This document shows positions 19,604 to 56,148 of a DNA stretch of 64,000 nt, in pieces. The stretch is taken from positions 159,261-223,260 of IMG/VR virus record IMGVR_UViG_3300043449_002710. One strand, given 5' to 3'. Made by a program: the position numbers and the translations under genes. The notes under the pieces are model-generated. The model had not been told where the DNA came from. It did no database searches and was given only the letters and a program-made list of their open reading frames with translations. Position 1 is the first letter of the stretch, and every line of letters begins with the position of its first letter.

Positions 19604-21172
19604 ATGAGAGCCTACTTTAAATTCCCCACCCTTGCTGCGATTGTTCTAGGGCGTAATGTTGTCAACGTTCCTGGGATTGAGGACTTTGTCGAAAAATTCG
19701 AGCAAAACGATCCAAGAATCGACAACTGGCTGAAGCGGAATCTGAGGAATTGGCTCATCAAGGATTACGACCGTTTCAGGCAGATCACACACCAAGAAGG
19801 AAACCCCGACTGGGTAGGCAAGGCCTTGGAGCGCGGTGAGAAAGTCTATGAAGTCAGACTTGATCGAGAGATCTTTGACAAGATCTCTCATGTGATCGAT
19901 TGGTTCAAATCGGACGACTCGCCTAAAAGGCTGGATGCCGTAACGGTGCCCGAAGCCCTCAAGCAATCGGACGCCTGGACTGAGAAGCTTACCAAAAAGA
20001 AAGTCGATCAAGGGATTGCTCTTGCGGGAGAAGAGATTTTTAAAAAGTACGGTGACGGGTATTCTTGGCGCAAATTGGTTTCCGAAGAAGCTTTGGTTCT
20101 TGAAGGAAAGAAAATGGGCCATTGCGTGGGCGGTTACTGGAGTTCTGTGCAATCAGGGGAGACCGAGATCCTTTCCTTACGCGACCCTAAAAACGAACCT
20201 CACTGCACAGTTGAAATTAGCCACAACGAAGTACGTCAAATCAAAGGCAAGCAAAACAAATCGGTCATCAAAGAGTATTGGTCTTATGCACAAGACCTTT
20301 TGAAAACTTTGAAAGAAAACGGCGTTTATGTCGGTGCTAACAACTTATCCAATATTGGTCTCTATGAGATCGATGGAAAGATTGTCACTTTCAAAGAACT
20401 TGTAGCAAACCTAGACTTAGTGAAAGCTCTTTTGAAAAAACATTTCGGTATTGATGTGACGGATGAAATGCAAGTCCAAGTTACCGAAGATGGAATTGAA
20501 GTCGGATCTAAATTTGTGGATATCCTTTTGGGGTTTTTGCCTCTTCCACGTAGACAAATTGAAGCCTATAAAAATCTCATGGAGGATTCTTACGACACAG
20601 AATTTTCCATTCACGACCACGATGTCACCGATCTCTATGACTATGTAGAAAAGCATTACCCCAAGGCTTACAAAAGATTGGTGAAGCTTCTTGAAAGTGT
20701 CGCAACCGAGGAAGAAGCTAAAAACGAAGACTACTTGAGCCACCGCTCGGCAAGCACTTTCTTGAAGGTGTATTCCGATGAATTGCAGCCGATTTATGAT
20801 GCCGCGATCTCAGGAATCTCTGACGGCTGGAGTGTTGGAACACAAGACGCTGCTCACAAATACGTCAAAGATAAATTGTCGGAGTACGGTTGGCTGTGCG
20901 ATTCCTATACTTCCGAAGATGGAGACGGTACAGTTTGGCTTCATCTCAGTTCTAGCGCAATTGCGGATGGTTATTTAGGTGATCTCTACAAAGACCCCTA
21001 CGGAAGAAGAGATGGCTTTAATAGCGAATTCGATGAAGAAGTTGCCAAGGAGCGCTTTGTCGATGCGCTATTTGAGAATGGTTTCCTAAATCAAGCGGAT
21101 ATGGCGAGTAAGAAAAAATTAAAATCCGCTTTGGAGTATCCGGCTTTGGGAAAAATCCTAACTAGATTTTAA
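19604..21172 (+). CDS. PcfJ-like domain protein carrying two KYP-type motifs
   Basis: LVLEGKKMGHCVGGY...ILSLRD...HCTVEI...QIKGKQN; N-terminal KFPTLAAIVL and C-terminal EYPALGKIL. Confidence 0.7.
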   Translation: MRAYFKFPTLAAIVLGRNVVNVPGIEDFVEKFEQNDPRIDNWLKRNLRNWLIKDYDRFRQITHQEGNPDWVGKALERGEKVYEVRLDREIFDKISHVIDWFKSDDSPKRLDAVTVPEALKQSDAWTEKLTKKKVDQGIALAGEEIFKKYGDGYSWRKLVSEEALVLEGKKMGHCVGGYWSSVQSGETEILSLRDPKNEPHCTVEISHNEVRQIKGKQNKSVIKEYWSYAQDLLKTLKENGVYVGANNLSNIGLYEIDGKIVTFKELVANLDLVKALLKKHFGIDVTDEMQVQVTEDGIEVGSKFVDILLGFLPLPRRQIEAYKNLMEDSYDTEFSIHDHDVTDLYDYVEKHYPKAYKRLVKLLESVATEEEAKNEDYLSHRSASTFLKVYSDELQPIYDAAISGISDGWSVGTQDAAHKYVKDKLSEYGWLCDSYTSEDGDGTVWLHLSSSAIADGYLGDLYKDPYGRRDGFNSEFDEEVAKERFVDALFENGFLNQADMASKKKLKSALEYPALGKILTRF

Positions 21173-21173
21173 A

Positions 21174-21202
21174 TTGACTTATTAAGTCAATTAAGTTAAA
21201 AT
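21174..21202 (+). promoter_or_regulatory. Sigma70-like promoter overlapped by a palindromic operator
   Basis: TTGACT-17-TAAAAT, 6 nt before the GTG at 21209; TTGACTTATTAAGTCAA is a near-perfect palindrome. Confidence 0.65.
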
Positions 21203-21208
21203 TCTCCT

Positions 21209-21655
21209 GTGGCAAAAAAAACTCGCCTTAAAAACTATCCGAGTCTTGAAATGGTTTTATCCATGGCCTTTAGTCGGGACCGTTGGGTGGACAAAGTTAG
21301 GCACCGGTTAGAGGGGGCTTTGGGCGAATACGCCAAGCAGAAGTTTGCCGAAGCCATTGGATACACGGGTTGGGATTGGACCATTGAAGTAGAAACGATT
21401 CTGGCAGGTGTTTCGGACTTAATGAACACTAAAAAAGTTCAAACCAAAACAAAATTTGACCGCAAAAAAGCTTTCCAAGAAGCTTACCAAGATGCTCAGG
21501 GCAGTTATGATCAAATCGTCCACGCTCGAAACACCTTGTGTAGAGAGCATCCATTCAACATGGAACAATACCAAAGAATTAGGCTTGTAAAACTAGATGC
21601 CGATACTTTGCTTAGAGAAATGGTTCTTAAATTTCTCCCGGGGATTTTGAATTAA
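21209..21655 (+). CDS. Hypothetical protein with N-terminal KYP-type motif
   Basis: 148 aa; KNYPSLEMVL. Confidence 0.7.
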   Translation: MAKKTRLKNYPSLEMVLSMAFSRDRWVDKVRHRLEGALGEYAKQKFAEAIGYTGWDWTIEVETILAGVSDLMNTKKVQTKTKFDRKKAFQEAYQDAQGSYDQIVHARNTLCREHPFNMEQYQRIRLVKLDADTLLREMVLKFLPGILN

Positions 21656-21664
21656 ACACGCCAC

Positions 21665-21693
21665 TTGACCTGCTAAGTCATTTGATATAACAT
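21665..21693 (+). promoter_or_regulatory. Sigma70-like promoter with a second TGAC-N7-GTCA operator
   Basis: TTGACCTGCTAAGTCAT followed by TATAAC/TAACAT, directly upstream of the HTH gene. Confidence 0.55.
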
Positions 21694-21702
21694 TGCTATA
21701 GC

Positions 21703-22287
21703 ATGTCTTACTCTAAAAAGTTGATTCAGATTAGGTCCAAGAAAAACTGGAGCCAGGAAAAGCTGGCCTCCCACCTGAATGTCAGTTTCGCTACCGTGAA
21801 TCGATGGGAAAATGAAAAATCTGAACCGCAAAGAGAAGCCAGAGAGTCGATTGATGTTTTGTGGGGAAGCCTACAAGAAGAAAACTACCCTGCCCTCAAC
21901 CAAGTCCTCGCGCATTCGAAAAGATCCAAGCTCACCATTCTTTTGGACGAGAACCTTTTTCAGCTCAAGCCAGCCCTAAAAGACTCTGGGTTTAAAGTCA
22001 TCTTAATGAAAAAAGGAACCTCCGACGAGGAGATTAGGGAGCTTGCCGAAGGCACTGCCATCCTCACAACTAATTCCAAAGACTTTATTCCCCACGCTGT
22101 CGCGGACGATTTCGATGTCATCTCGGCGGAACTGATCAAGTTCATCGATACTGAGCCCACTCGTAAAAACCAGACGGTTCAAAAGATAGCCAAAGCCATT
22201 CGAGAAAGTGGGATGGTTTTCACCCGTGGTAATTTCAATTTAGTCGTCCGAGATGACGGATCTTACGAACTCAAACCTTTAGTCTAA
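21703..22287 (+). CDS. XRE-type HTH fused to a DUF5615-like PIN domain
   Basis: WSQEKLASHLNVSFATVNRWENEKSEP; then ILLDENL...GTSDEEI...ILTTNSKDF; NYPALNQVL in the linker. Confidence 0.75.
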   Translation: MSYSKKLIQIRSKKNWSQEKLASHLNVSFATVNRWENEKSEPQREARESIDVLWGSLQEENYPALNQVLAHSKRSKLTILLDENLFQLKPALKDSGFKVILMKKGTSDEEIRELAEGTAILTTNSKDFIPHAVADDFDVISAELIKFIDTEPTRKNQTVQKIAKAIRESGMVFTRGNFNLVVRDDGSYELKPLV

Positions 22288-22293
22288 GTTGAG

Positions 22294-22860: not shown

Positions 22861-22872
22861 ACTGATGTTTTA

Positions 22873-23364: not shown

Positions 23365-23853
23365 TCACCGCTTCTTAAGCTTGGCCTTTTTCATGGTCGG
23401 GTATTCCATCTCCGCTTTAGCGCGAGCTTTTTTAGCTAAAGTTTCTTTTTCCTTTTTAGTCAACCGCTTCACTTTGGCTTTAGAAGCTTTTGCTCTTTTT
23501 CCCTTTTTGACTTTGGCTTCGATGACTTCCGAAACAGAAGCAAAGATCGAGGCAAGTCCTGGGTAGCGATTGGAATCCACTTGAACCTTGGTCACCATTT
23601 CTTTGACTGCACCACTTTTCTTCACAAGATTCTCCAGTACGGGTTCAATCGCTTCCAAGGCTTCGTCTGCCCACTTGCGGTCGAGATCCTTGGTGGTTTC
23701 TTCAAGCTGATCGTAAGGAACAAAAGATTGCTCCCAACGAGCGCTGCGCTCGGCACTAACTTCGGCTTTGACAGCCTTTGCCCAGTGAACCCACGCCTCG
23801 TGAAAAACTTCAGCCAAGGATTCTTTGATCTGATCTTTTGTTTCTTTGTCCAT
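23365..23853 (-). CDS. RyR-like domain protein with an internal YP motif and basic tail
   Basis: AEVFHEAW...FVPYDQLEETTKDLDR resembles the RyR repeat; NRYPGLASIF; ATG after GAGG. Confidence 0.6.
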   Translation of the reverse strand: MDKETKDQIKESLAEVFHEAWVHWAKAVKAEVSAERSARWEQSFVPYDQLEETTKDLDRKWADEALEAIEPVLENLVKKSGAVKEMVTKVQVDSNRYPGLASIFASVSEVIEAKVKKGKRAKASKAKVKRLTKKEKETLAKKARAKAEMEYPTMKKAKLKKR

Positions 23854-23861
23854 TTTAAACC

Positions 23862-26800
23862 TCAAACATCTTCGTAGGTGCCGTCTTCGAAAAGAATGCC
23901 CACATGATAGCCTTTGTCGATGTGCTCTTCGGCGAGATCCATGGCTTCTTCGTAGGTTTTAACTTTGACTTCTTTTTTTCCTTCACCTTTTTTATCAAGG
24001 ATGACAGTCAGTTCTTCATCTTTCGCGGAAGCTTCTGCCTGATTGTCATATTTCTCGATGATCGACCCGATGTCAGTATACAAGAATTTATTCTTTTCTC
24101 GGTCATATACAACGGTCAAGTTGTAGGTATCGCCCGAGTTAATATACTGAAATCTTGGACGGGTCGGATTGCTTTCATTCGGGTCGTAGGCTTCCACACC
24201 GTGGTATCCCACTAAATCAGAAACGTGCTCCAAGATATTTTCGACATAGCTAGCTGGGTTATAAGTATTGTGCTTTTTGTCGTAATATCTTTCGCCGTTC
24301 TCATAGGCTTTTTTAGCTTCAGCCATGGCCGCTTTCAATTCTTCCAAGGTGGTTGAGGCTTGCGTTTTATAATAAGAAGACTCCACAACAGATATCTGAA
24401 TATCCCCAATAATCTTCTTAATGGTTTCAATCGCCAAATTCGGATCGACCTTACCTGGAATCTTAAGAATGCTATCGTCGTCAAAGGAGATGCCAGAGAC
24501 GCCTAAAGCTTTCTCGATTTTTTTGATCTGATCCAAAGAGACTTTGTCAAAACCAATTTTGAGTGCAAAAGCGGTTTCTGAAGCAGAGGCTTGCGTTTTA
24601 TAAGAAGACTCCGCAGTGAATCCGTCAAACCAATCACCGAACTCTTCGGTGTGTTTGACATTCTCAGGTTTTTCACAAGTCTTAGAGCTAGTCTCGTCGT
24701 CGTTGCACCACTCTTTCGCTTCTTCCAAAGACAGCCCTTTTTTCATGACTTTTTGAGGGTGGCCTTCTTTATAAAAGCGAACGATCTTGTAGGTTTTTTC
24801 TTCTTCTTCTTCTTCCTCGTCTTCATCTGAGGAGGCTTCAATTTTCTCGCTAGAAAGGTATTCCACCAAGTCGTCAGCCACAACCGATCCATCGGCTTCG
24901 ATCACGACCGGAACACCGGCTTCTGGATCTTCACCCATGGACTCAGCCCAGAAGATATAGACTTCATCGGGTTTAGCGGCATACTCGACCCCACGCTGAA
25001 CTTCCATCAGGTCTGGGAGATCGCCCACTTTGGGTTCTTCGATGATGGTTTCATTTCCGGCCTTATCGACCAGGATGAGCTGGCAGCCTTCCATCACCTC
25101 GTCATCACCAAGCTGAAAGTAGTCTCCACGATTAGAGGAAACTTCATCTCCGTTCTCATCGATGAGAACAGCGCTCTTATACTTCACAGCGGGGTTTTCT
25201 TTAACTGGGCCTGAGAAGAAAAAATCTTTCACCCAGAGGCGATCAATCTTGTCGCTGTCTTTGAACACGTCGATGTAAGTGCCTTGATACTTATCGAATT
25301 CGCGGTGTTCGCATTCAAAGCCATGCTTCTCAAGTTCTTTACAGATCTTGTCAAAAGTCTCGTGATCGTAATCCTGATCGGCTTCGCCAGTGGCTTCAAT
25401 CCGAACAGCGGCTTGCACCGAAGATTTGCTGGTCAATTCCATAGTGTTGCCTTTGTCGTCCTCAATGTGTTTTCCGAACGGGCTAGAGTCTTTGACCCAT
25501 TTCCAGTTGCCGGTCCCAAAAAACTTGTTTGCTTTGATTTCGGCAGCTTTAGTTGGATCGCCAGAGATCAAAACCTCCCAAGGCTTTCCGATCTTAGCGG
25601 AGTCTTCGTCATAGATATGGATGCGGTCGAATTCTTTGGCAAGATTCGGGAAAGGATCGGACTCCGCCGACTTGACGGCTTTTTTGGCGGCAGATTCCAT
25701 TTTGTAAGGGCTCACATTGCCGTGATCACTCACGTACCAAACGTTAGGCCAAAAGTTATGCTTTTGCATCCAAGCCTTGGCAGCGGCTTCTGCTTCCTCT
25801 GCCGTATTGAACTCGCCAAGGAATTCCCCATTTTTAATAGAGACAGAAATCTTTGATCCTAGTGGGCCTGAGTCAGAAAAAATAATGTCCTGGTCGTCAG
25901 GTTGATCATCTTGAAATTCTTCTTCTTCGGATTCTTCTTCTTCGGATTCTTCCGTAGCCGAAAGAACACCGTGTTCATAAACGTCTTCAGCAAATTGATC
26001 GAAATCCATCCGATCTTCGATTGAATAGTCTTGATCGAGTTTGTACTGCTGGTACATGGATTCAAGCTCTGTGAGGTTTTCTTTTAACCAAGCTTCAAAA
26101 TCGGTTAGTTCTTCCACGAGTTCTCCGCCTTCCCAGTCTTCTTCAGCACCACTTTTAACTTTGTTTTCAGTCTTGGCTGTCCACATATCTTGGTTCTCGC
26201 TGTCTTCTGGCTTGGTGGTGATGATCAGAGAGTTCCCATCCACGTCACTCCACTCTGGAATAAGAGTGGGGTAGGTTTTCTTGGTTTTGAATCTCCAGAA
26301 AAAATCCGTAAGGTTATCCGCAAACTTTTCTACTCTATGCGGGTCAGCCAAGATGTCTCCGAGTTCCAAAGCCATCTTACCTTCGCCAAGCTCTTTCAAA
26401 GAGTATTCACCGTGGAGTTCTTTATCCAAAAAGATTTCCAACGTGGTTTTGAACTTCTTCAAATCCGAATCCGAATCGTCTTCGGCTCCACCCACAGCTT
26501 GATTTCCATTTTTAGGCAGCCTAACCATTCGGCTGTGTCCGGTGAAACCAAATTTCTTATAAAATGTTCTTAATTTTGAAATCGGCATTTTGTTTTTCTC
26601 TTTAGGTACGGGCTGTAAATCAAGAATCACGCCATACTTATCCGCTAAATCTACAATAAACTGCATTGCTCTTGTGCCTTGGCCTTGTCTTGGTTCTAAG
26701 GCTTGAATCCACTTCAGAGCAACTGAGCGTTCCCCTTTGGGTCCACCCAGCCAAGGTCTCAACTCGATCACCGCTTCATTGTTAAAAATTCTAATTTTAT

Positions 26801-27524
26801 TTTCAAATGGGTGTGGCTGGGTTTTTCCCCAGACATCCTTCATAAATTTATCAATATTATCCGACTTCAAATCGGCTGGGCTAGCCTCTTGATCTGTTCG
26901 CAAGCGGAGTTTAAGTTTTTGAGTTTCGGAAGAGGTCAGCATCTTTACACTCTTTCCAAACTTGTCTTTAAGATGAGATGCGACTAGCCCCAAAAGATTC
27001 TTATTAAAAGGGGCATCCCTGTCATCGGATGCGAATTTCTTAATGCCCATTTTAGCAAGCTTGGTCCAGTCCAAAAGGGCTTTAGCTTCAGGGGCCGCTT
27101 CCTTCTTGTGCTTCTCGGCCAAGGCTTTGGCCATCTCAGAGATCTCTTCGTCTCGGGCGATTTGGTTCACTAGATCCCTGACCTGATCCCGATAGCCGCC
27201 TGGAAGCTTCTCTGGCATCGAAGTGTTGAAAAACTCTTCTGGCTTCTGCTCGATCTTCCAACCCGAGGAACTGGCAATTTGTTCCAAGTATTTGGTGTGC
27301 TTCGAGGTGGTTCGAGAATACTTCTTCTCGTTGACGTAGAGAAGATCGCTTGGCGCATCGCGTTTAGCGATAATGGTGCGATAGCTGTAAAGGGTGTCGC
27401 CCTTGGCCCAGATGATATCTCCGTCTTTGCCTACGCTTTCGCCGGTAGATAACCAAGAACGAATCAAGCCTTCTTCTTTGGCCCCAGCCATAGCCTTCTC
27501 AGCCACAATCTTTTGTCTTGCCAT
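23862..27524 (-). CDS. Large mosaic, polyprotein-like protein including a GNAT-like acetyltransferase module
   Basis: 1220 aa; LYSYRTIIA...YSRTTSKH; PRQGQGTRAMQFIVDLADKYGV...LRTFYKKFGF (GNAT); GYHGVEA...YINSGDTYN; acidic spacers; repeated xxAS linkers. Confidence 0.75.
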   Translation of the reverse strand: MARQKIVAEKAMAGAKEEGLIRSWLSTGESVGKDGDIIWAKGDTLYSYRTIIAKRDAPSDLLYVNEKKYSRTTSKHTKYLEQIASSSGWKIEQKPEEFFNTSMPEKLPGGYRDQVRDLVNQIARDEEISEMAKALAEKHKKEAAPEAKALLDWTKLAKMGIKKFASDDRDAPFNKNLLGLVASHLKDKFGKSVKMLTSSETQKLKLRLRTDQEASPADLKSDNIDKFMKDVWGKTQPHPFENKIRIFNNEAVIELRPWLGGPKGERSVALKWIQALEPRQGQGTRAMQFIVDLADKYGVILDLQPVPKEKNKMPISKLRTFYKKFGFTGHSRMVRLPKNGNQAVGGAEDDSDSDLKKFKTTLEIFLDKELHGEYSLKELGEGKMALELGDILADPHRVEKFADNLTDFFWRFKTKKTYPTLIPEWSDVDGNSLIITTKPEDSENQDMWTAKTENKVKSGAEEDWEGGELVEELTDFEAWLKENLTELESMYQQYKLDQDYSIEDRMDFDQFAEDVYEHGVLSATEESEEEESEEEEFQDDQPDDQDIIFSDSGPLGSKISVSIKNGEFLGEFNTAEEAEAAAKAWMQKHNFWPNVWYVSDHGNVSPYKMESAAKKAVKSAESDPFPNLAKEFDRIHIYDEDSAKIGKPWEVLISGDPTKAAEIKANKFFGTGNWKWVKDSSPFGKHIEDDKGNTMELTSKSSVQAAVRIEATGEADQDYDHETFDKICKELEKHGFECEHREFDKYQGTYIDVFKDSDKIDRLWVKDFFFSGPVKENPAVKYKSAVLIDENGDEVSSNRGDYFQLGDDEVMEGCQLILVDKAGNETIIEEPKVGDLPDLMEVQRGVEYAAKPDEVYIFWAESMGEDPEAGVPVVIEADGSVVADDLVEYLSSEKIEASSDEDEEEEEEEKTYKIVRFYKEGHPQKVMKKGLSLEEAKEWCNDDETSSKTCEKPENVKHTEEFGDWFDGFTAESSYKTQASASETAFALKIGFDKVSLDQIKKIEKALGVSGISFDDDSILKIPGKVDPNLAIETIKKIIGDIQISVVESSYYKTQASTTLEELKAAMAEAKKAYENGERYYDKKHNTYNPASYVENILEHVSDLVGYHGVEAYDPNESNPTRPRFQYINSGDTYNLTVVYDREKNKFLYTDIGSIIEKYDNQAEASAKDEELTVILDKKGEGKKEVKVKTYEEAMDLAEEHIDKGYHVGILFEDGTYEDV

Positions 27525-29708: not shown

Positions 29709-30263
29709 ATGAAGAAGTATCCCACAGTTACAAAGGTTTTGACGCCTTTACGAGTAGAAGAACCTACTTGGACTCGTGAGAGCTTGCTTCAGAATTTCCG
29801 CCAACGCTCACGCGCCTTAGGCCGTTTGTCTCAAGGGCAAACTAGGATCGAAAGCCTTTATCCCAACGAGCACTTCTCCGATGATGACGTGGCGTTTGGG
29901 TATCTCACGAATTCTCAGGTCGTTGTCGCCTCCGATTTTGAAACCGAAGAGAAGGTCGCAGTCGGCTACATCGCTCATGTAGTGATGCTCGTGGCTTTGG
30001 GTTATGCCAAAGACGAAAACGATACGCACCCTAAGATTGACTATAAGGTTCGTGGGATCGTCAAAGCGGCTTTGCATCGCGATGTCATCTTTTGGGAAAC
30101 TCCAGAGGAACTTCTTTCGGACCCCGATCGGTTCTTTGCCCTTCAGAGCTGCTTGAATGAACTTCTAGATCGTGGGCTCATCTCTTCTGCCAACAAAGTC
30201 TATGGCGCTGGCACTGGCGCTACTCCCTCGCTCGGAACAGTAGGCCAACTTTTGAAAGCCTAA
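29709..30263 (+). CDS. Hypothetical protein with N-terminal KYP motif
   Basis: 184 aa; MKKYPTVTKVL. Confidence 0.7.
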   Translation: MKKYPTVTKVLTPLRVEEPTWTRESLLQNFRQRSRALGRLSQGQTRIESLYPNEHFSDDDVAFGYLTNSQVVVASDFETEEKVAVGYIAHVVMLVALGYAKDENDTHPKIDYKVRGIVKAALHRDVIFWETPEELLSDPDRFFALQSCLNELLDRGLISSANKVYGAGTGATPSLGTVGQLLKA

Positions 30264-30295: not shown

Positions 30296-31156
30296 ATGAC
30301 TAAACTTAGTGAAAAGAAATACCCTGCTCTCAATAGGATTTTAAGCAGCAACAGCCTGATGATCAACATCGACGGCAAACTTTACACCCCCGAGCAACTC
30401 GACCAGATGGAAGGCGAGGAGATCAAGATCGAGGGCGATCTGATTTTACCCGATCATCTCGGGCTCACTCGATTTCCTGCCTGGGTATCTCGATGCGTGG
30501 TCTTAGGTAGTTTTTTATGCCCTCGGAACCGGCTCACTTCACTCGAAGGTGCTCCGCAAAGCGTAGGTGGGGATTTTATCTGCTACGATAATCAACTCAC
30601 GACTTTGAAAGGTGGCCCACAAAAGGTGGGCGGGAATTTTTTGTGCGACTCCAATCAACTCACGACTTTGGAAGGGGCTCCTAAAAAAGTGGGTAAAGAT
30701 TTTTCCTGCGCTAGAAACAATCTCACGAACCTCAAAGGCGCACCTCAAAAAATAAACGGCGTTTTTCATTGCGATCAAAACCAACTCACTTCACTCGAAG
30801 GTGCCCCGCAATCAGCGGGAAGTTTTTATTGTACCTCCAACCAGCTCACTACCCTTCGAGGCGCTCCCCAAGTAATCGAAAGTTTTGATTGCACCGACAA
30901 TCAACTGGTGAGTTTAGAAGGCGCACCTGAAAAAACCAGTAAGAGTTTTCGTTGTGGCGTAAACAAGCTCACTAGCCTCAAGGGCGCACCTAAAGAAGTG
31001 GGCTGGGAGTTTGCTTGCTTTGAGAACCAACTCACTTCACTCGAAGGTGCTCCAGCAAAAGTGGGGTGGGGTTTTGACTGCTCCAAGAACGCTAAAAAGT
31101 TCACCAAAAAAGACGTTCAAAACGTCTGTCAGGTGGGTTTGAAAATAAAGGTATGA
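30296..31156 (+). CDS. Leucine-rich-repeat-like protein (LTSLEGAP repeats) with N-terminal KYP motif
   Basis: Nine 20-21-aa repeats LTxLxGAPxxVGxxFxCxxNQ; KKYPALNRIL. Confidence 0.85.
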   Translation: MTKLSEKKYPALNRILSSNSLMINIDGKLYTPEQLDQMEGEEIKIEGDLILPDHLGLTRFPAWVSRCVVLGSFLCPRNRLTSLEGAPQSVGGDFICYDNQLTTLKGGPQKVGGNFLCDSNQLTTLEGAPKKVGKDFSCARNNLTNLKGAPQKINGVFHCDQNQLTSLEGAPQSAGSFYCTSNQLTTLRGAPQVIESFDCTDNQLVSLEGAPEKTSKSFRCGVNKLTSLKGAPKEVGWEFACFENQLTSLEGAPAKVGWGFDCSKNAKKFTKKDVQNVCQVGLKIKV

Positions 31157-31608
31157 GTATGAAAAGTTTGAATAAAAGAAAGTTCCCAAAGCTGTCAAAA
31201 GTATTAAGCTACATCGACAAAGCCGTCCCCAAAGAAATGTGTGACTGTGGTGCGACCTCCACGGGAAGCAACATGCACTCGACTTGGTGCAAAGGCGTGA
31301 AACCGGCTGAAGCTTCTAGCCAAGAGATCGAGAAGCTGGCCAAAAAATTCAGCGAGCTTTTGCGCTCGGATCATACCGCCGAAGAGATGGAAGAAGTGAT
31401 TGAAAAAAATCGCGAGCACAAGGCCAACGGAGATAATGGGATCTGCGCTACCCACGATATCTGTGACGCCAACATGGTCATGCTCGATGCTTTTAAAAGC
31501 GTCACCGGCAGAGAACCTAGCTTTTTAACAGACTCCGAAAACGAAGCCGATATGCCGCTTTGGAACAAAGCTTGGGAATTAGCCAAAGCTAATGAGTTCT
31601 GGGTCTAA
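31153..31608 (+). CDS. Hypothetical protein with N-terminal KFP motif
   Basis: 151 aa; RKFPKLSKVL; CDCG...HSTWC; ICATHDICDANMVM. Confidence 0.7.
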   Translation: MSMKSLNKRKFPKLSKVLSYIDKAVPKEMCDCGATSTGSNMHSTWCKGVKPAEASSQEIEKLAKKFSELLRSDHTAEEMEEVIEKNREHKANGDNGICATHDICDANMVMLDAFKSVTGREPSFLTDSENEADMPLWNKAWELAKANEFWV

Positions 31609-33419
31609 TCATCTAGGCATTTAACGTATTTGGCTTGACCCGCGTCATAGATCTTGTACCAGCCAAGTTCCTGTGCGTGCTGTGCTTGGGTTAATTTTCT
31701 CTCATCCATGTTTGCTCGACAGCGCAAGCGGTTAAAAGTGTTAACCCCATCTGTCCATTGCCATCCTAGTGTTGTCTTCTCAAGGTGAAAGCCGTGCTCC
31801 AAAAGATGTTTTCCTGTCCCATACCGAAGATCCACGTAGTTGATAATTTCCCCCTTTTTAAATTGAGAGATTTCTAAAGCTTTTTTAAGAAGTCTAGAAA
31901 AGCCTCCAACTACAGAAATAAAAGGCTTGGTGCAAAACCGACTGACGTGGAACTCTTGGCCCACAACACGATAACTCATGGCAGCTATAATTTCCCCCCG
32001 GTAACTTAGCGCTAAAGACTTTGCCGGAGTATAACCCATGAGATGGTTGGTATGGAAAAAAGCTTTTGCGTCGAATTCAGAAGTGATCTCGCATTTTCTA
32101 GCGAAAATCTTTTCCGAGTTTTTACCCAGAGCATTCCAAACAATCGATTTTACGATATCTGGTTTTTGGCGGATCTCATCCTCACGGAATTGAAAAAGTC
32201 TTTTTCCGTACTTTTTAAAAAGTTCTCTCCTCTTCAGGTGAGAATACTTATCCTCTACCCGAATTTCGGAGTGCCAAAAAATACCATCGGCTTCTAAATA
32301 GATATCCTCTGTTAATTTAAAGTCTGGTTTTATTTTAGATTTTTCTGGTAATAACCATTCGGGGGTAGCACCGTATCTAGTTATTTCTAATAGATCAGCT
32401 ACTTTTTCTTCTAATTTTCTAAGGGTAACCGCTCGCGCAGGGTGACCGTGCCCCATTAACACCGAGTTTGGTTTTGCCCACCATTCCCCATATTTCTCAT
32501 CTATAAAACGAGCGGGTTCCAGAGATTTTTTATAGGTAGAAAAGTCTAAAGTCACATGAGGGAATAATTTTTTAATGCGTTCTTGCACTTGTTCTGGAGG
32601 TATAATCGCTTTTTGACGTTGTCTTGCTTGATGTCTTCTATTTTTGTGTAGCATTAGCCTTTGTGGTTGGACCCACCATTCACCGTACTCGACATCTATA
32701 AAACGAGCCTTTGTTGTTACATTTACAAAAGTAGATTCATCGAGTGTTATTTCAGGCCGGTTTGAAAGAGCTTTTTTTACGTCCTCGATCGTATAAACGG
32801 GATTGCCAGTTCTTTTTGGGTGGCACTGCCCCTTCATGATGTTGTTTGGAAACGCCCACCATTCACCGTATTCGTCATCAACAAACAAAGCTTTCTTATC
32901 CACGGACTCATAAGTCTCTTCTACCAATCGCATAAAAGGCCTACTCGGGTACTTCTGATAGCCTTCTTGGATGCGTCTCTGAACCTCGGCTGCGGGTAGT
33001 GCTCGAATAAAAGCGTCCCGCTTAGGGTGCTTGGTTTGATGGTGCTTGATTACAAATTGAGGCTCTGCCCAATACTCTCCAAACTTTTCATCAATGAACC
33101 GCGCCTGGATAGAAAGGCCTTTGTAGGTGGACTCGTCCAGCCGCATATAGGGATGAATCCGAATCACTTCTGCCTGGATTTCGTCAACGGTCAAGCCGCG
33201 TTGATTTTTGAGCCTCTTCGGATGCTGCTTTTTACCCCTAAGAATCTCAGCAGGAACAGCCTCAAATTCCCCATGCTCGGAGTCCCTAAATCGAATTCGA
33301 GTCGCGGTATTGACATACTCCCCAAAATCAAAACTTAGGTGAGGTTGCGGGGGGACTGTTTCAGATCCCTTGTGGATTCTTTCTAAGATCTCTTGAGGGC
33401 TTTTTGGTTTTACTGCCAT
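31605..33419 (-). CDS. Homing-endonuclease-like protein: five DUF723-like repeats, VSR/PD-(D/E)xK nuclease, Mom-like GNAT C-terminus
   Basis: Repeats (A)RFIDExYGEWWAxP; KPDF...LEADGIFWH...LFQFREDE; FARKCEI...NHLMG...SRFC...GGFSRLL...YVDLRY...IYDAG. Confidence 0.7.
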   Translation of the reverse strand: MAVKPKSPQEILERIHKGSETVPPQPHLSFDFGEYVNTATRIRFRDSEHGEFEAVPAEILRGKKQHPKRLKNQRGLTVDEIQAEVIRIHPYMRLDESTYKGLSIQARFIDEKFGEYWAEPQFVIKHHQTKHPKRDAFIRALPAAEVQRRIQEGYQKYPSRPFMRLVEETYESVDKKALFVDDEYGEWWAFPNNIMKGQCHPKRTGNPVYTIEDVKKALSNRPEITLDESTFVNVTTKARFIDVEYGEWWVQPQRLMLHKNRRHQARQRQKAIIPPEQVQERIKKLFPHVTLDFSTYKKSLEPARFIDEKYGEWWAKPNSVLMGHGHPARAVTLRKLEEKVADLLEITRYGATPEWLLPEKSKIKPDFKLTEDIYLEADGIFWHSEIRVEDKYSHLKRRELFKKYGKRLFQFREDEIRQKPDIVKSIVWNALGKNSEKIFARKCEITSEFDAKAFFHTNHLMGYTPAKSLALSYRGEIIAAMSYRVVGQEFHVSRFCTKPFISVVGGFSRLLKKALEISQFKKGEIINYVDLRYGTGKHLLEHGFHLEKTTLGWQWTDGVNTFNRLRCRANMDERKLTQAQHAQELGWYKIYDAGQAKYVKCLDD

Positions 33420-34292: not shown

Positions 34293-34433
34293 ATGATCCA
34301 CGCAAATAAATATCCCGTAGTTGCAAAGGCCCTAAAGTCCAAGAAAAAGTCCGAGAAAAAGTCCGATAAAAATTACACTTTAAGCGTTTTGCCTTTCAGC
34401 GCATCACGGGCTATACCTTGGTTAATAAAATGA
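34293..34433 (+). CDS. 46-aa ORF with KYP motif (below the ORF-track cutoff; possibly truncated)
   Basis: MIHANKYPVVAKALKSKKKSEKK...; has promoter and RBS; the 3' end overlaps a convergent gene. Confidence 0.45.
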   Translation: MIHANKYPVVAKALKSKKKSEKKSDKNYTLSVLPFSASRAIPWLIK

Positions 34434-38394: not shown

Positions 38395-38643
38395 ATGCCC
38401 AATGATTTTGCCAAGCTGAAAGAAATTCTTAACACTGCATCCGCTCCTAGGGCCACACTGAAGATTTTTAAAGACGGCCACGTGGTTTCCGAAGCAGAAG
38501 CTTTGGAATTAGAGCAAGAAGTTCAAGCCAGGGAAGAAGCTTTAGCAGCCAGCTTATCTTTTGACGAAATCATTTCCGCTTTAGTTGACGAAGATTGTTT
38601 AGACATTGCTAAAAAATTGCACGAGATTTTGCTGGAGAATTAA
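38395..38643 (+). CDS. Hypothetical protein
   Basis: 82 aa after a GGGTTATTTT motif; N-terminal DFAKLKEILNTAS resembles the KYP motif. Confidence 0.65.
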   Translation: MPNDFAKLKEILNTASAPRATLKIFKDGHVVSEAEALELEQEVQAREEALAASLSFDEIISALVDEDCLDIAKKLHEILLEN

Positions 38644-39384: not shown

Positions 39385-40965
39385 ATGAAACTTTTTCACG
39401 GCACGTCTTCAAAAAAGCTTTCGATAATAAAAAAAGATGGGCTTTTAAATCCTTTTTTAACCAACGATATTAAATTAGCCGAATACTATGCGGATCTGAC
39501 TAGCGAGATGGATGAATCCTCCCCTGTTATCCTTGAAGTTGAAGTTAATAAAAATTTCCTCGTTTACGACAAAGCTGCAATGGATGAGCCTGTTTTAGTG
39601 CCAGAAAAACAAAGAGATCAAGCTTGGGAAAAAGCAGCAAGAGAACACCCAGAGTGGGTGAAAAATGGTTTTATTTGTATCCCAAAAAACGCTTGGGAGT
39701 ATTCTTTAGTTGGTGTGCATTCGGTGCAGTACCGTGGAATTATCCCCGCCAATAAAATTAAAAATAAAGACCCCTCTATCCTGTCCAAAAAATATACAGG
39801 TGCCCCTTCTGTAGACAGCTATCCTGTCACCACTTCTATATTGCGTAGCGGCATAGAAATTGATACATCAGGGATGTGGACGAAAAAGAAATCAGCCAGA
39901 AATTTTACAATGCACTCCTTAGACACAAAGACGAGTACATCAAAATCTTGGGCAAAGAGAAGTACGAGCAATCAATTGCCGAACTTCGCAATCGTCTTGA
40001 CTCGATCGAGTCCCACAAAAAAATTTTGGAAGAGATTAGGAACCTGCCCGAATCCGAGCGATCGAAAATCAATAACTACAGCAGCCTTATCGCCTACCTT
40101 GAAAAACTTTGAAGTAAGGGCAGATTCCTTAGGTGGCCCGGGCTACGGGCTCTCCCAACCCAGCCCCCATCAAAACGGATCGGACACTCCGGTCAGGGAG
40201 GATTCTCTCCCAGCAGGGGCCCCGATGGCCATCCACGAGATGAATCGACGCGGGGTGGAAGTCAAAGAAGCGCTCATGATTCGGCCTTATTATTTAGATA
40301 TGAAGACTCAAACCCCGAAAAAACAATATCCCACACTTTCTGCCATCTTAGCAGCCGAAGCCAAGGAAGAAAGAACCTTGGAAGAAGCTGAGAAGGCTCA
40401 GGGCATGGAAAAGCTTGGGATTGCTTCCCCGGAAGAGTTTGCGGTTAAGTTCAAGGGGAAGCTTCAAGAGTTGGCCGAGGAACATGGGATTGGGGATGCC
40501 ATCGCTTACAGCTTCCGCTCTCGTAAGATCGAACTGATCGGAAGCGATGCCATCCTGCTTCTCGATTACGACATGAACGCTCTTTACACTCGTCCCATGT
40601 ACCCGGTCGATGTGGACGGCATGATTGAACTCGATGAAGAAGACCTCGAATCCGAAGAGACAGAAGAGACAGAAGAGACAGAAACAGAAGAGACAGAAGA
40701 ACCTGAAGCCGAAGAAACAGAAGAAGCTGAATCCGCCGTTCACGCTGGCATGAATCTTTCTCCAGATGAGCCTTTCGACGACGAAACTTCTGCAGAAGAG
40801 TTCAATGAATGGCTTCACAAGTTGCGTCAGGTTTGGGAGTCCTACGAAGGAAAACCAGTTCCCCATTTCGGCAAAGCAGATGAAGATGGCGGTGCCAATT
40901 ATCGTAAGGACTGGGCAAATTTAGTTCAGGCAATGGAAAAGTTTTTAATCGCTTATTACGGATGA
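39385..40965 (+). CDS. Composite ORF: N-terminal ADP-ribosyltransferase-like domain, a frameshifted middle and a KYP-motif acidic C-terminal part (may be a separate gene from ATG 40300)
   Basis: LFHGTS...FLTNDIKLAEYYA...ILEVEV (H-G-T ART pattern); SYPVTTSIL; MKTQTPKKQYPTLSAIL; EETEETE tract. Confidence 0.55.
   Translation: MKLFHGTSSKKLSIIKKDGLLNPFLTNDIKLAEYYADLTSEMDESSPVILEVEVNKNFLVYDKAAMDEPVLVPEKQRDQAWEKAAREHPEWVKNGFICIPKNAWEYSLVGVHSVQYRGIIPANKIKNKDPSILSKKYTGAPSVDSYPVTTSILRSGIEIDTSGMWTKKKSARNFTMHSLDTKTSTSKSWAKRSTSNQLPNFAIVLTRSSPTKKFWKRLGTCPNPSDRKSITTAALSPTLKNFEVRADSLGGPGYGLSQPSPHQNGSDTPVREDSLPAGAPMAIHEMNRRGVEVKEALMIRPYYLDMKTQTPKKQYPTLSAILAAEAKEERTLEEAEKAQGMEKLGIASPEEFAVKFKGKLQELAEEHGIGDAIAYSFRSRKIELIGSDAILLLDYDMNALYTRPMYPVDVDGMIELDEEDLESEETEETEETETEETEEPEAEETEEAESAVHAGMNLSPDEPFDDETSAEEFNEWLHKLRQVWESYEGKPVPHFGKADEDGGANYRKDWANLVQAMEKFLIAYYG
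39876..40112 (+). CDS. Nested -1-frame segment that looks like the true coding frame here
   Basis: DEKEISQKFYNALLRHKDEYIKIL... is amphipathic and helical, whereas the 526-aa frame over the same bases is W/T/S-rich and atypical. Confidence 0.55.
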   Translation: MDEKEISQKFYNALLRHKDEYIKILGKEKYEQSIAELRNRLDSIESHKKILEEIRNLPESERSKINNYSSLIAYLEKL

Positions 40966-40969
40966 TCCA

Positions 40970-41251
40970 ATGAAAAATCTTAAAAAATACCCTACCCTTT
41001 CCAAAGTCTTGGCCGCCAAATCCACCGTTCAAGCGGGCAATTGGGATATCACAGCCGAAGACTTGGTGGACTTCACCAATAATGTCGAGCCTCTTTACTT
41101 AGAAGCTCAGTCGATGCGGACCATGCGCCAAGCCGAAGCTTTGGCAGAAGAAGTCATCGACGCTTATAAAAAACAATCCCCAGGACATAAGATTGTGACC
41201 GATGTTTCGGAACTTGCCGAGGCGCTCTGGGCTGAATTCAAATCTCAATAA
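40970..41251 (+). CDS. Hypothetical protein with N-terminal KYP motif
   Basis: MKNLKKYPTLSKVLAAK. Confidence 0.75.
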   Translation: MKNLKKYPTLSKVLAAKSTVQAGNWDITAEDLVDFTNNVEPLYLEAQSMRTMRQAEALAEEVIDAYKKQSPGHKIVTDVSELAEALWAEFKSQ

Positions 41252-41502: not shown

Positions 41503-41796
41503 ATGAAAAAATACGAAACCGTAGAAAAAGTTATCGCCGTTTCAACAAAAGCTGACGTGTTTAAAGGCGATTTAGGTTATCTCGCTTTGTCACAAAAAGA
41601 AGCAAAGCCTTCTGAATTTTACAGAAGCTTAGAAAAATTTGTGACCATGCTCGCACCTGATCAGGAAGCCGCGAGTGAATGGCTGCAGAAATCCAACCTC
41701 GATATCGAAAACGGGGATAGCTATTACGTCTACGAGGTCAGCATTAAGCTGGTCGGAGAAAAGACGTACTCTAAAGACGAGGAAATGGAAGAGTAA
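41503..41796 (+). CDS. Hypothetical protein with a variant KYP motif
   Basis: MKKYETVEKVIAVS. Confidence 0.7.
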   Translation: MKKYETVEKVIAVSTKADVFKGDLGYLALSQKEAKPSEFYRSLEKFVTMLAPDQEAASEWLQKSNLDIENGDSYYVYEVSIKLVGEKTYSKDEEMEE

Positions 41797-53337: not shown

Positions 53338-53492
53338 CTTATGGCAATGGGATACATGGAGAAATTTGCGGCTACTCATGTGGTTGTCTAGGACCCCACG
53401 CCTAGCGACACTCTTGGCAACTAATCCAAGCGACAGATGGAAGCCAAGCGTGGTTGGGAGACGCGACAGAGGGAAACCTCACTCCCAAAACT

Positions 53493-53726
53493 TTACCACC
53501 ACTTGTCTGGGCACTGAGCCTCAATTAATTTTGTTTTTACTTTCATATAACAAAGACATTCCAGGCAGAGATCCCGCTTTTTATCGTACTTCGGGCAAAC
53601 GCTACAGATTTGAAGTCGTTCTTGGGTCACCTTGTTGGTGATTGTGGTTCTTCGAGTAAACAGAAATCGCCAAATCACACGCGCCCAAGTTTGCACGGCA
53701 AGACGGACTGCTTTTATCAACCTCAT
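53493..53726 (-). CDS. Small Cys-rich protein (DUF6171-like), paralog of 445-699
   Basis: RLQICSVCPKY-x6-CLECLC-x4-K-x6-CP-x2-W. Confidence 0.65.
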   Translation of the reverse strand: MRLIKAVRLAVQTWARVIWRFLFTRRTTITNKVTQERLQICSVCPKYDKKRDLCLECLCYMKVKTKLIEAQCPDKWW

Positions 53727-53793
53727 AGGTTTCCTCTACTATTTAAAATAAACGCCATTATTTTAGTAAAAAGATTGAAGAGGAGACTTCCCA

Positions 53794-54915
53794 ATGACCG
53801 AAGAAATCATGGATTTGCCAGATATCGAAACCCCAGATCCAGAAGTCTATACGAAGTCTGAGCCTGAGGTGGAAGAAGATCTCAAGAAAACAGCCATCTC
53901 GTTTGGTTTCATTGGAGTCGGTCAAGCGGGTGGCAAAATCGCAGCCGAGTTCTACAACTTAGGTTATCGGAAAGTTGTGGCCGTCAACACCACGAAAAAT
54001 GATTTCATGGGTCTTTCCATCCCTACCAATCGGCATCTAGTCGTTGGAGATGGCTCAGGCGCTGGGAAGAAGCCTGAAGTCGGGGCCAAGGCCGTTCAAA
54101 ACGCCAAGGAAGATATCTTGTCGTTGCTTCGGAAAAGCTTTGGCTCGAACGTGGACAAGATCATTGTCATCGCCTCAGGCGGAGGCGGAACCGGAAACGG
54201 TGGCTGCCTAGAGATGATTCAAATCGCTCAAGACTACATGAAAGAGATCCAAAAAAATCCGGCTCGAAATGTCGGGGCTTTGGTGGCTCTTCCTAAAGAC
54301 TCTGAAAAAGGCGCGGCTCAAATTCATTCGGCCATCCTGATGGAAGCTCTGTTTGAAAAAGCCAAAACGGATCTAGCCCCTTTGATCTTGGTCGATAATG
54401 AGCAGATCGCCAAGCAGTGGCCCAACGCTTCGATTGCCCAGGTATTCTCCATGGCCAACAAGAACGTCTGCGGGCTTCTCGACATTTTCAACACGTTGGC
54501 TTGCCGCCCGAGCCAGTACAGCTCGTTTGACAAAGCTGACCTTTGCTCAGTCTTAGACCACGGTGCGGTGATCTTTGGTTCGACCACCCTAAACGATATT
54601 AGTTCAGGGTCAGCCATTTCTGATGCAATCCGCCAAAACCTCCAGAAGGGGATTTTAGTGGAAGGGATCGACTTATCCACCTCCAAAGCCGGGGCTGGTA
54701 TTTTAGTGGGTTCTTCAGAAATCTTAAACACCCTTCCCTCGTCTTATGTGGACGAAGCCTTTAAGACGTTGGCTCGGGTGATGGGTTCGGACAAAAAAAC
54801 CATCACGGTGCATCAAGGGGTGTTTGAAACAACTAAGCCTAAGCTTTTGCTCTACACAATCTGTGGCGGCGTAGAGTTGCCTACCGTGCGTCTTGAAAAA
54901 CTCAAACGGGGTTAA
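53794..54915 (+). CDS. Tubulin/FtsZ-superfamily GTPase (PhuZ/TubZ-like)
   Basis: FIGVGQAGGKIA, AVNT, GSGAGKKPEVG, SGGGGTGNG signature, FDKAD T7-loop-like; GAGGAG RBS. Confidence 0.9.
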   Translation: MTEEIMDLPDIETPDPEVYTKSEPEVEEDLKKTAISFGFIGVGQAGGKIAAEFYNLGYRKVVAVNTTKNDFMGLSIPTNRHLVVGDGSGAGKKPEVGAKAVQNAKEDILSLLRKSFGSNVDKIIVIASGGGGTGNGGCLEMIQIAQDYMKEIQKNPARNVGALVALPKDSEKGAAQIHSAILMEALFEKAKTDLAPLILVDNEQIAKQWPNASIAQVFSMANKNVCGLLDIFNTLACRPSQYSSFDKADLCSVLDHGAVIFGSTTLNDISSGSAISDAIRQNLQKGILVEGIDLSTSKAGAGILVGSSEILNTLPSSYVDEAFKTLARVMGSDKKTITVHQGVFETTKPKLLLYTICGGVELPTVRLEKLKRG

Positions 54916-54921
54916 AAAACG

Positions 54922-55731
54922 GTGGAGGAGTATTACAAATGCCTGGGGGCTTCTCCGAAGGATACCCCTCAGGAGCTTCGCAGCAAGTGGCTTAAGAAAT
55001 GCCGTGAGCACCACCCCGACAAGGGGGGAGATCCTGCTCAGTTTCGAGCTGCGACTCACGCCTATAAGATGCTCACTGATGCTTCATATCAACAAGAGCA
55101 TAAAAAAGTAGACCTTAGCGACATCCTGACTTTCAATGTCCGAATGCCCGTCTCTTTCGAAGAAGCCTTCTTTGGGAAGAGTTTGGTCTTCACTTGGAAC
55201 CGGATGGAACTTGATCAAACGCTCACGCCGATCCAGCCAGCCGATGGGAAGCTTGAGCCGCTTTCGATCACCCTAGTCATCCCGCCTGGATCGATGCAAG
55301 GGTTGCGTTTTTCAGAAGCGGGCAAGGGCTTGAGGCTAGGCGAGCATGTCGGGGATGTCCAAGTTCAGATCATCGTGCGAGGGCATCCCAAATTCAAAGC
55401 ACAAGACCTCAACATCCTCTCGGAAGAGAAGGTTCCACTAGAGATGCTCTTGCGCGGCGGAAAGATCGACGTGCAGACGATGTTTGGAATCAAGGAGCTG
55501 AAGATTCCCCCAGGCACCCAGCCCGGCGAGCAGCTCAAGATCAAGCATTGCGGGGTGAATAAAAAAGGAGCGCATCTGGTCACAGTCTTACCTATCTTCC
55601 CCACCGGGCAAGACTTAAAAGACAAAAGAACACTCTCGGATCTCGACATCGACTGGACGGTCGAGGAAGAAAAAGAAGATGCCACGCCGAATGAAGACCT
55701 AGAGATGTTCAACGTCTTTCGGAAGATTTAA
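54922..55731 (+). CDS. dnaJ: DnaJ/CbpA-like co-chaperone (J domain plus C-terminal peptide-binding domain, no Zn finger)
   Basis: YYKCLG...HHPDKGGD; VSFEEAFFGK; LLRGGKIDVQT...LKIPPGTQPG. Confidence 0.85.
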   Translation: MEEYYKCLGASPKDTPQELRSKWLKKCREHHPDKGGDPAQFRAATHAYKMLTDASYQQEHKKVDLSDILTFNVRMPVSFEEAFFGKSLVFTWNRMELDQTLTPIQPADGKLEPLSITLVIPPGSMQGLRFSEAGKGLRLGEHVGDVQVQIIVRGHPKFKAQDLNILSEEKVPLEMLLRGGKIDVQTMFGIKELKIPPGTQPGEQLKIKHCGVNKKGAHLVTVLPIFPTGQDLKDKRTLSDLDIDWTVEEEKEDATPNEDLEMFNVFRKI

Positions 55732-55755
55732 TCTTATCTAGTGCTCGAAATAGAT

Positions 55756-56148
55756 CTAGTGCGCGATATAGATCTCGTGAGCCATCCTAGTCATGAAGCC
55801 CACCAGTTCCTGGATATTCTGATCAGTCGGGTCAACGCCGAACTGCTCTAAGAGATCGTGCGCCTGAGCCAAAGATTGCAGCGTTTCATTTTGAATGAAT
55901 TGCATCAAAGCTTGTGGGTTTTTGGCTTTGACAAAAGCCCCTGGATGGCTCTCGGTATAGGGATCTAAGCCTTGTTTTTTCAGTTCCGAACGGATGCGCT
56001 CATTGGATTTCTGAACCAAAAGATAGGCCTGATCGATCAAAGCATCCGTCTCATTCCCATCGAGGCCAAAATCCGCCAAGACACGCGCTTTCTGCGCAGA
56101 AGTGACAATTTTCTGCAGAGTAGGATACTTCCGAGAGATCGATTTCAT
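55756..56148 (-). CDS. Hypothetical protein with N-terminal KYP motif
   Basis: MKSISRKYPTLQKIVTSA. Confidence 0.7.
   Translation of the reverse strand: MKSISRKYPTLQKIVTSAQKARVLADFGLDGNETDALIDQAYLLVQKSNERIRSELKKQGLDPYTESHPGAFVKAKNPQALMQFIQNETLQSLAQAHDLLEQFGVDPTDQNIQELVGFMTRMAHEIYIAH

Follow-up and report, generated by a model that had tools for sequence, protein, structure and literature searches.

The capsid targeting sequence (CTS) of the internal proteins and Alt of bacteriophage T4 is removed by the prohead protease, which has the cleavage consensus Leu/Ile-x-Glu, and outside T4-like phages we know of no short sequence that marks phage proteins that travel together or share a hub. The T4 CTS directs internal proteins into the scaffolding core for injection (PMC3012670). 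Here, we analyze a peptide motif of nine to twelve residues that recurs at the ends and in the linkers of approximately twenty otherwise unrelated accessory proteins of an uncultivated phage known from metagenomic data. The stretch of DNA under study (hereafter the window) comprises the last 64 kb (contig positions 159,261-223,260) of the 223,260-bp contig IMGVR_UViG_3300043449_002710, which corresponds to JGI 3300043449 Ga0451725_0000003. Together with loci L004, L025, and L035-L042 of the same genome, ~143 of the 223 kb were read, covering contig positions 3.9-66.5 kb and 143-223 kb. The motif is confirmed as real, selected at the protein level and specific to one lineage, and on balance it is probably a portable docking tag for a single common partner, as judged from the sequences.

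Other short peptides are known to sort proteins into compartments. The encapsulation peptides of microcompartments are short amphipathic helices that can be located at either terminus of otherwise unrelated cargo, are joined to it by a poorly conserved linker and bind the shell, and homologues that stay outside the compartment do not have them (PMC4594438). Encapsulin targeting peptides are short and conserved, usually C-terminal and sometimes N-terminal, and dock in a pocket on the inside of a shell with the HK97 fold (PMC8346489). The polyvalent proteins of phages and conjugative elements, in turn, contain many counter-defence domains and are predicted to be packaged in virions and delivered into the host along with the DNA (PMC5512222).

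Recurrence and selection of the motif

The original prediction, which was made from the window alone, listed 13 related peptides and read them as a candidate capsid targeting signal. A six-frame scan with the pattern x[YF]Px[LVIT]xx[VIA][LVIF] returned exactly 13 matches, all in the frames of long open reading frames (ORFs) and none in a non-coding frame, and all 13 peptides were found where they had been placed, each in a coding frame. The tighter core [YF]Px[LV]xx[VI][LVF] occurs 11 times in the 80 called proteins of the window (19,999 aa), compared with 0.23 occurrences expected from residue shuffles (2000 trials; mean 0.23, maximum 3), which bears out the suspected enrichment over background. 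The loose pattern matches approximately once per 15 kb in unrelated loci, mainly in non-coding frames. The codons of the conserved residues vary synonymously, with all four Pro codons and several Leu codons in use, and no DNA repeat family covers the motif sites, hence selection acts on the peptide rather than on the DNA.

In the ~143 kb of genome, 22 strong copies were counted, of which 12 are N-terminal, four are C-terminal (2-7 residues from the stop codon) and six are internal. Most copies start within 11 residues of the start codon, and 15 of the 22 lie within ~12 residues of one end of the protein, where random placement would give 3.1 (P < 5e-6). The N-terminal preference that had been proposed is thus reflected in 12 of the copies and in the bias toward termini, whereas it does not account for the C-terminal and internal ones. 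The consensus can be written as [KR]-[YF]-P-[TA]-L-[SA]-[KR]-[VI]-L-[AS], with Pro at times replaced by Ser; the motif is usually preceded by Lys or Arg and followed by Ala, Ser, or Gly, in agreement with the lysines and small residues previously pointed out on its two sides.

Within the window, no copy was found in the helicase, the clamp loader, RuvC, the glycosyltransferases or the fibres, and the proposed absence from replication enzymes, glycosyltransferases and fibres therefore holds there. Likewise, in the rest of the genome read there is none in DNA polymerase A, the primase, the sigma factor or the MoxR/VWA proteins, and the giant proteins of 1220-2451 aa are free of the motif as well. 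A scan of 2.9 million IMG/VR contigs with a narrow pattern gave 28 matches, several of them necessarily from the present contig and only the self-match confirmed, a number that lies at or below a rough estimate of chance.

Copies in the window and elsewhere in the genome

The 522-aa PcfJ-like protein (gene 19604-21172) carries a copy near each end, namely KFPTLAAIV at residues 6-14 (19619..19645, plus strand, as are all copies below unless stated) and EYPALGKIL three residues before the stop codon (21134..21160). Two further carriers lie downstream, a 148-aa protein of unknown family (gene 21209-21655) with NYPSLEMVL at residues 9-17 (21233..21259), and a 194-aa protein (gene 21703-22287) in which NYPALNQVL (21883..21909) is situated in the linker between a helix-turn-helix (HTH) domain (HTH_3, residues 9-43) and a DUF5615/PIN-like domain (from residue 79). 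In the 166-aa protein of gene 23365-23865, RYPGLASIF occupies residues 100-108 (23542..23568, minus strand), after an RyR-like region (residues 9-73) and before a Lys-rich tail, with a Met 11 residues upstream. Three genes that follow one another have the motif at the N-terminus: KYPTVTKVL at residues 3-11 (29715..29741) of a 184-aa protein (gene 29709-30263), KYPALNRIL at residues 8-16 (30317..30343) of a 286-aa leucine-rich-repeat protein with 63-nt repeats (gene 30296-31156), and KFPKLSKVL at residues 10-18 (31180..31206) of a 151-aa protein (gene 31153-31608). KYPVVAKAL (34308..34334) forms residues 6-14 of a 46-aa, Lys-rich small ORF (34293-34433), which is a putative gene. The copy nearest to the consensus, KYPTLSKVL (40985..41011), is found at residues 6-14 of a 93-aa protein (gene 40970-41251), and on the minus strand KYPTLQKIV (56104..56130) is found at residues 7-15 of a 130-aa protein (gene 55756-56148), which adjoins the DnaJ and tubulin genes and for which no homologue was found outside the present contig.

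QYPTLSAIL (40324..40350) lies inside a 526-codon ORF (39385-40965) with a Tpt1/ART-like N-terminus, nine residues past the Met at 40297. This ORF is open throughout, yet by codon-usage scoring its stretch 39876-40112 codes better in another frame, which contains a 78-aa ORF; a frameshift, overlapping genes or a recent fusion could each produce this arrangement. Given the better coding score of another frame in this central stretch, the copy at 40324 resembles the N-terminus of a module, and it probably marks the start of a separate or fused C-terminal module that begins at Met 40297.

Three weaker peptides had also been listed, the first two as variants and the third as a genuine copy. KYETVEKVI (41509..41535; residues 3-11 of the 97-aa protein of gene 41503-41796) has Glu in place of Pro and scores 17.3 with a position-specific scoring matrix (PSSM), compared with a shuffle maximum of 20; as a sequence, it is plausible as a degenerate copy. 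The other variant, DFAKLKEIL (38404..38430), at the N-terminus of an 82-aa protein (gene 38395-38643), is weak and no better than chance. SYPVTTSIL (39817..39843) falls below the PSSM threshold, does no better than chance either and is probably a chance match, so that its listing as a genuine copy is not upheld.

Outside the window, N-terminal copies were found at L004:14545, L035:11354, and L035:13214. A paralogue of the PcfJ-like protein (L004:9902-11302) has GFPTLAEVI near its N-terminus (L004:10007), and a paralogue of the 151-aa protein (L035:10968-11378) has KFPKLSQVL. C-terminal copies, 2-7 residues from the stop codon, are present at L004:12626, L004:14499, and L037:6975, and an internal copy directly after a Met at L004:13995.

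A portable add-on outside the folded domains

When the motif was masked, an all-against-all BLAST search separated the carriers into at least 14 families without detectable similarity to each other, and the boundaries of Pfam and PHROG matches place the motif beyond the recognizable domains, so that it is the sole element common to otherwise unrelated proteins, as the original prediction had proposed. In Pfam terms it lies outside PcfJ (residues 112-225), after the RyR-like region, far from the Tpt1/KptA-like region and ten residues ahead of the DUF5615/PIN-like domain, while the PHROG match of the 151-aa protein begins at residue 35, past the motif. These boundaries support the peptide as a portable add-on that is separate from the folds of its carriers.

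The 184-aa protein illustrates this arrangement. Its family comprises 23 clusters of homologues (P0002-P0024), which are exclusively metagenomic; it is absent from 185,579 GTDB reference genomes of bacteria and archaea, the protein has no match among known phages, and within IMG/VR the family is confined to the present contig. The homologues have a conserved domain from approximately residue 40, whereas their N-termini are variable and mostly without the motif. An AlphaFold2 (AF2) model built on the homologue alignment (predicted local distance difference test, pLDDT, 87; predicted template modelling score, pTM, 0.80) has residues 1-22, including the tag, as an unstructured tail of lower pLDDT, with the fold beginning at residue 23. 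The model has no match in the PDB at an E-value below 0.1, and the predicted domain may have an undescribed fold.

Relatives, module boundaries and the possibility of a relic

Two of the loci compared share genes with the phage at 35-66% identity, L028 on the tail side of the window and L032 in replication, and this level of identity marks both as genuine relatives. The ortholog of the 184-aa protein in L032 (58% identical) has kept an N-terminal KYPVLSKIL. In the GC-richer loci L027 and L028, copies occur at N-termini, in linkers and at one C-terminus (L028:2688), namely RYPLLTRVL, RYPLLSRLV, QYPALAHVL, AYPVLADIL, AYPALARVL, and the C-terminal RYPTLARIL; compared with the window, Tyr, Pro, Leu, Val/Ile and Leu are unchanged, Arg takes the place of Lys, and the other positions drift. 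No motif was found in L038, a more distant context. The distant homologue P0027 has unrelated sequence at the exact domain junction where the present clade has the motif, and an HTH_3-type module is joined via the motif both to the PIN-like domain in the window (21703-22287) and to the 184-aa domain in P0003.

Several module boundaries coincide with the motif. One domain (domain X) ends right after it in L004:11312-12673, runs via a Met plus the motif into a second domain, which itself ends with the motif, in L004:12660-14540, and runs via two copies into leucine-rich repeats in L027:7370-9913. In both L027 and L028, the genes that follow P0002 contain the same modules in permuted order, and motif copies adjoin the breakpoints. 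C-terminal copies adjoin a next gene that starts with the motif at 21134/21233 in the window and at L004:14499/14545, and, among the six internal copies, three are preceded at a distance of 1-11 residues by a Met that resembles a former start codon. The motif is thus gained, lost and carried along as modules fuse, split and swap, and the simplest account is that the tag is at home on termini and becomes a linker tag when neighbouring tagged genes fuse. A side observation concerns L027:10573-11433 and L028:1389-2723, two near-identical relatives in which a Cys-rich N-terminus, leucine-rich repeats and the tag with a 27-residue segment are reordered within a single gene; from its sequence this looks like a recent module permutation.

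The same boundaries can be read in another way, in which a mosaic gene pool has left the motif behind as a relic of junctions or linkers, namely a short helix that flanks modules and is copied along with them without any common partner. The fusion and fission points of domain X, the L027/L028 permutations that break next to motif copies, and the pairs of a C-terminal copy and a gene starting with the motif would all be expected from such a relic. However, at least 14 masked carriers have no detectable similarity, which makes simple co-inheritance unlikely, and the copies, having diverged from one another at synonymous DNA sites, are poor substrates for recombination. A relic would also have to explain why five residues stay constant across phages of differing GC content while the surrounding linker is free to vary, and the strong bias toward termini suits a tag and not a structural spacer. 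We regard the relic as unlikely, although it is the best of the alternatives to a docking tag.

The junction motifs of polymorphic toxins, such as VENN of CdiA, are the known case of a short conserved peptide at the boundary of exchanged variable modules. They differ from the present motif in having a large constant delivery region upstream and conservation at the DNA level, whereas most copies here have nothing upstream and their DNA has diverged; moreover, no immunity-gene pattern is evident.

A probable docking tag and its possible partner

Strong selection, restriction to a small group of large phages, portability, presence on accessory proteins of unrelated families and a bias to termini and linkers are the behaviour of short linear docking motifs. 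A common binding partner, which the original prediction had offered as one of its options, is therefore retained as the preferred reading and appears somewhat more probable than all others together: the peptide would be a lineage-specific short linear motif that docks its carriers to one receptor, which agrees with its being a portable add-on, with its position in a flexible tail and with its absence from most homologues of the 184-aa protein. In a helix projection, the four conserved hydrophobic positions fall inside a 120-degree arc and the flanks are basic, with a net charge of ~+2.4. The bound peptide might thus form an amphipathic turn or helix capped by Tyr-Pro, in which Tyr/Phe, Leu, Val/Ile and Leu on one face would plug into a groove of a single receptor, and the internal copies would be former terminal tags trapped by the fusion of adjacent tagged genes.

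The nature of the partner can be named with much less assurance. The carriers, which include PcfJ-like, HTH-PIN, Tpt1/ART-like, RyR-like and leucine-rich-repeat proteins and several of unknown family, belong to the counter-defence or host-takeover type. In other phages, proteins of 950-2000 aa contain PcfJ-like domains, and one of these proteins has an ART-PolyVal domain as well. Because of the precedents for loading peptides, the counter-defence type of the carriers and the presence of PcfJ-like domains in proteins of the polyvalent class, a scaffold or shell component of the procapsid interior ranks first among the candidate receptors, in which case the tagged proteins would enter the head and be injected along with the DNA. 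By analogy with these systems, the capsid is a tentative choice of partner, and the fuller proposal, namely that a tailed-phage capsid loads its cargo through a peptide of defined sequence usable from either end of a protein, a phage counterpart to the loading peptides of encapsulins and microcompartments, is slightly more doubtful still.

The comparison with T4 shows how far the analogy can be taken. As in T4, where the CTS is the only thing common to diverse, fast-evolving counter-defence proteins (PMC3012670), a short peptide unites carriers of the same kind (ART-like, nuclease-like and small proteins of unknown family). The sequence is a different one, however, and the CTS is strictly N-terminal, whereas only 12 of the 22 copies here are, with four C-terminal and six internal; the motif is followed by Ala, Ser, Gly, or Lys in place of a conserved acidic residue. 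An N-terminal signal cut by a prohead protease, as the T4 analogy would imply, does not fit because of the C-terminal copies, at least four in the present genome and one or two in its relatives (21134, L004:12626, L004:14499, L037:6975, and L028:2688), the linker copies and the lack of a cleavage consensus. The earlier capsid-targeting reading is thus supported in part, namely for a shared docking tag and not for a T4-like, N-terminal and cleaved signal.

With the encapsulation peptides of microcompartments, the motif has in common its terminal position and the absence of the extension from homologues (the 184-aa family, the L027 PIN ortholog and the P0027 junction). Those peptides are longer (15-20 residues) and follow a hydrophobic pattern without a fixed sequence, whereas the present motif has 9-12 residues and a Tyr-Pro that is nearly invariant; the phage capsid would serve as the compartment, and no microcompartment shell family is among the Pfam matches in the ~143 kb. 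For encapsulins, the likeness lies in the shell, as tailed-phage capsids have the same HK97 fold, whereas the family-1 consensus differs (PMC8346489) and encapsulin cargo adjoins the shell gene, unlike the carriers here, which are scattered in accessory clusters. Polyvalent proteins follow the same functional logic, and PcfJ-like relatives of the tagged 522-aa protein form part of the 950-2000-aa phage proteins mentioned above; their domains are covalently joined in one chain, whereas here mostly separate small proteins share a tag. A listing of RyR and PcfJ among the polyvalent-protein domains was not confirmed, as the paper mentions neither (PMC5512222). Several of the PcfJ-like giants in L006-L017 (e.g., L007:2604-8630, L014:1977-6092, and L017:7418-11062) end in similar tails that contain Gly-Gly-[Ala/Ser/Leu]-Val, and these may be a further terminal signal that is shared in another group of phages.

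A binding model of the kind proposed is found in the YPXnL late domains of enveloped eukaryotic viruses, in which a disordered Tyr-Pro with a spaced Leu or aliphatic residue docks in a hydrophobic groove of a host adaptor (ALIX). The likeness is confined to a Tyr-Pro-x(n)-Leu pattern in a flexible tail and implies no homology; the Bro1/V-domain partner of the ESCRT pathway is eukaryotic, whereas the present genome is that of a tailed phage with a jumbo-phage-like helicase, and the resemblance is most likely convergent.

Several points weigh against a docking tag, and in part specifically against a capsid partner. The tagged genes lie in accessory clusters outside the structural operons, and genes for head, scaffold and protease were not found in the ~143 kb read, which exclude contig positions ~66.5-143 kb. 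AF2 renders the N-terminal tag of the 184-aa protein as coil and not as helix, and a helix is predicted solely in a low-confidence, single-sequence model of the HTH-PIN protein (pLDDT 40). The hydrophobic moment (0.39, compared with 0.25 for shuffled peptides) is a modest excess, and the motif has only 9-12 residues. No receptor emerged from the sequence analysis, and there is no sign of proteolytic removal, with no conserved acidic or other cleavage residue after the motif. Finally, L027 has the PIN ortholog by itself and without the tag, and the N-terminus of P0002 is degenerate, hence the tag is dispensable in at least some families.

Whatever its partner, one peptide flags ~twenty accessory proteins of a 223-kb phage as candidates for acting together, with gene fusion and fission seen exactly at the tag positions. 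If the partner were the capsid, the injected counter-defence effectors of metagenomic phages could be predicted from sequence alone, and any newly acquired gene could become an injected effector by the addition of approximately ten residues; since a short motif easily arises or gets fused on, this would explain how effectors are recruited, and the tag could also serve as a compact handle by which foreign proteins are packaged. If the partner were instead a chaperone, a host hub or the membrane, the carriers would still form one of the clearest short-linear-motif networks in a bacterial virus.

Cleavage, membrane binding and nucleic-acid signals

Apart from the relic, two other roles for the peptide were weighed against docking to a protein. 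As a protease site or degron, it would allow a protease of the prohead, ClpXP or Lon type to trim the carriers, release them or limit their lifetime. T4 capsid targeting sequences are cut by the prohead protease, the residues after the motif are small, and a site in a linker would let fused modules be released. Cleavage at the copies 2-7 residues from a stop codon would free nothing useful, though, the would-be scissile position has no invariant residue, and no gene for a protease was found in the 143 kb read, so that we consider this role improbable.

Marginally less probable again is an amphipathic helix that anchors its carriers to the inner membrane, like the terminal helices of MinD, FtsA and MreB. 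The terminal position, the single hydrophobic face and the positive net charge are what such an anchor would have. Lipid, however, requires neither a near-invariant Tyr-Pro nor a fixed register, which argues for a protein pocket, and the peptide is short, with only four hydrophobic residues and a modest hydrophobic moment.

A nucleic-acid signal (a promoter, a translation-initiation or RegA-like operator, or a recombination site) would fit the many copies just past start codons in A-rich sequence, but with synonymous positions varying freely, no DNA repeat family at the sites and further copies at C-termini and in linkers, an explanation at the DNA level was ruled out, and chance is excluded by the residue shuffles, which leaves this pair of explanations a negligible probability. 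Two specific functions were rejected as well, sliding-clamp binding because polymerase, helicase and primase are all without the motif, and an import tag for a phage nucleus because the replication and transcription proteins are untagged.

Upstream elements

The element GTTATTTT lies 5-45 nt ahead of start codons, often ~7 nt before the ATG, and eight of its 11 copies in the window are directly upstream of genes. It was located in the window at 19589, 38364, 58637/58663, 48058 (minus strand), 27568 (minus), 16385 (minus), and 10857 (minus), and elsewhere at L036:4607 (minus), L036:11873, and L004:4604 (minus). A role as a promoter or leader element is possible, and the leaders could then be very short. 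The element precedes two fibre operons (15993 and 58704) and the tagged operons that start at 19604, 38395, and 23862, the last of which includes gene 23365-23865; its occurrence before both kinds of operon is a weak hint, the numbers being too small to claim co-regulation.

A second upstream element, T(T)AGTAAA(A), is found 15-50 nt before the PAPS-reductase-like, tubulin, glycosyltransferase, RuvC and other genes (27634, 53764, 56386, and, on the minus strand, 35734, 22875, and 9743). All five window copies of TTAGTAAAA are upstream of genes, and it precedes the RuvC, tubulin and DNA-modification genes; elements of the TTAGTAAAA type may mark a second promoter class.

Genome context

The gene content of the window is that of a tailed phage, with collagen-like tail fibres and virion proteins, in addition to a DnaB-like helicase, a clamp loader, a tubulin homologue, DnaJ, HNH endonucleases and glycosyltransferase-like genes. 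A blastn search with 8 kb found no nucleotide relative among the 50,697 GenBank phages of INPHARED, and the sole tblastn matches of the helicase, at 27-29% identity, are to jumbo phages of Proteobacteria. Rfam gave no match in the window or in L004. An apparent ORF-free stretch of 4 kb in L004 proved to be an artefact, as a 2451-aa gene runs past the end of the locus.

Two large proteins of the window are without a family match. The first (31605-33419, minus strand) has 604 aa and four internal repeats of ~65 residues, with DNA repeats 183-213 nt apart. The second (23862-27524, minus strand) is a strongly acidic protein of 1220 aa with runs of Glu, Asp and Ser, directly upstream of the RyR-like tagged gene. 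Elsewhere in the genome, a DNA polymerase A with an intein (L035:5313-9377), a 1033-aa protein with a faint LAGLIDADG match (L036:6880-9981), and a TnpB/Cas12f-like nuclease (L035:11537-12586) were found. In the segment L036:486-5964 lie genes for a sigma-70-like factor, for a MoxR AAA+ protein and its VWA partner, for an S-adenosylmethionine lyase and for response-regulator receiver proteins; such a regulatory and anti-restriction set is unusual among phages.

A near-identical contig of 73.7 kb is also present in Logan SRR35180140, a second data set. The JGI and Logan assemblies are independent and start at most 37 nt apart (JGI position 1, Logan position 38), and this shared start hints at a physical genome end or a repeat.

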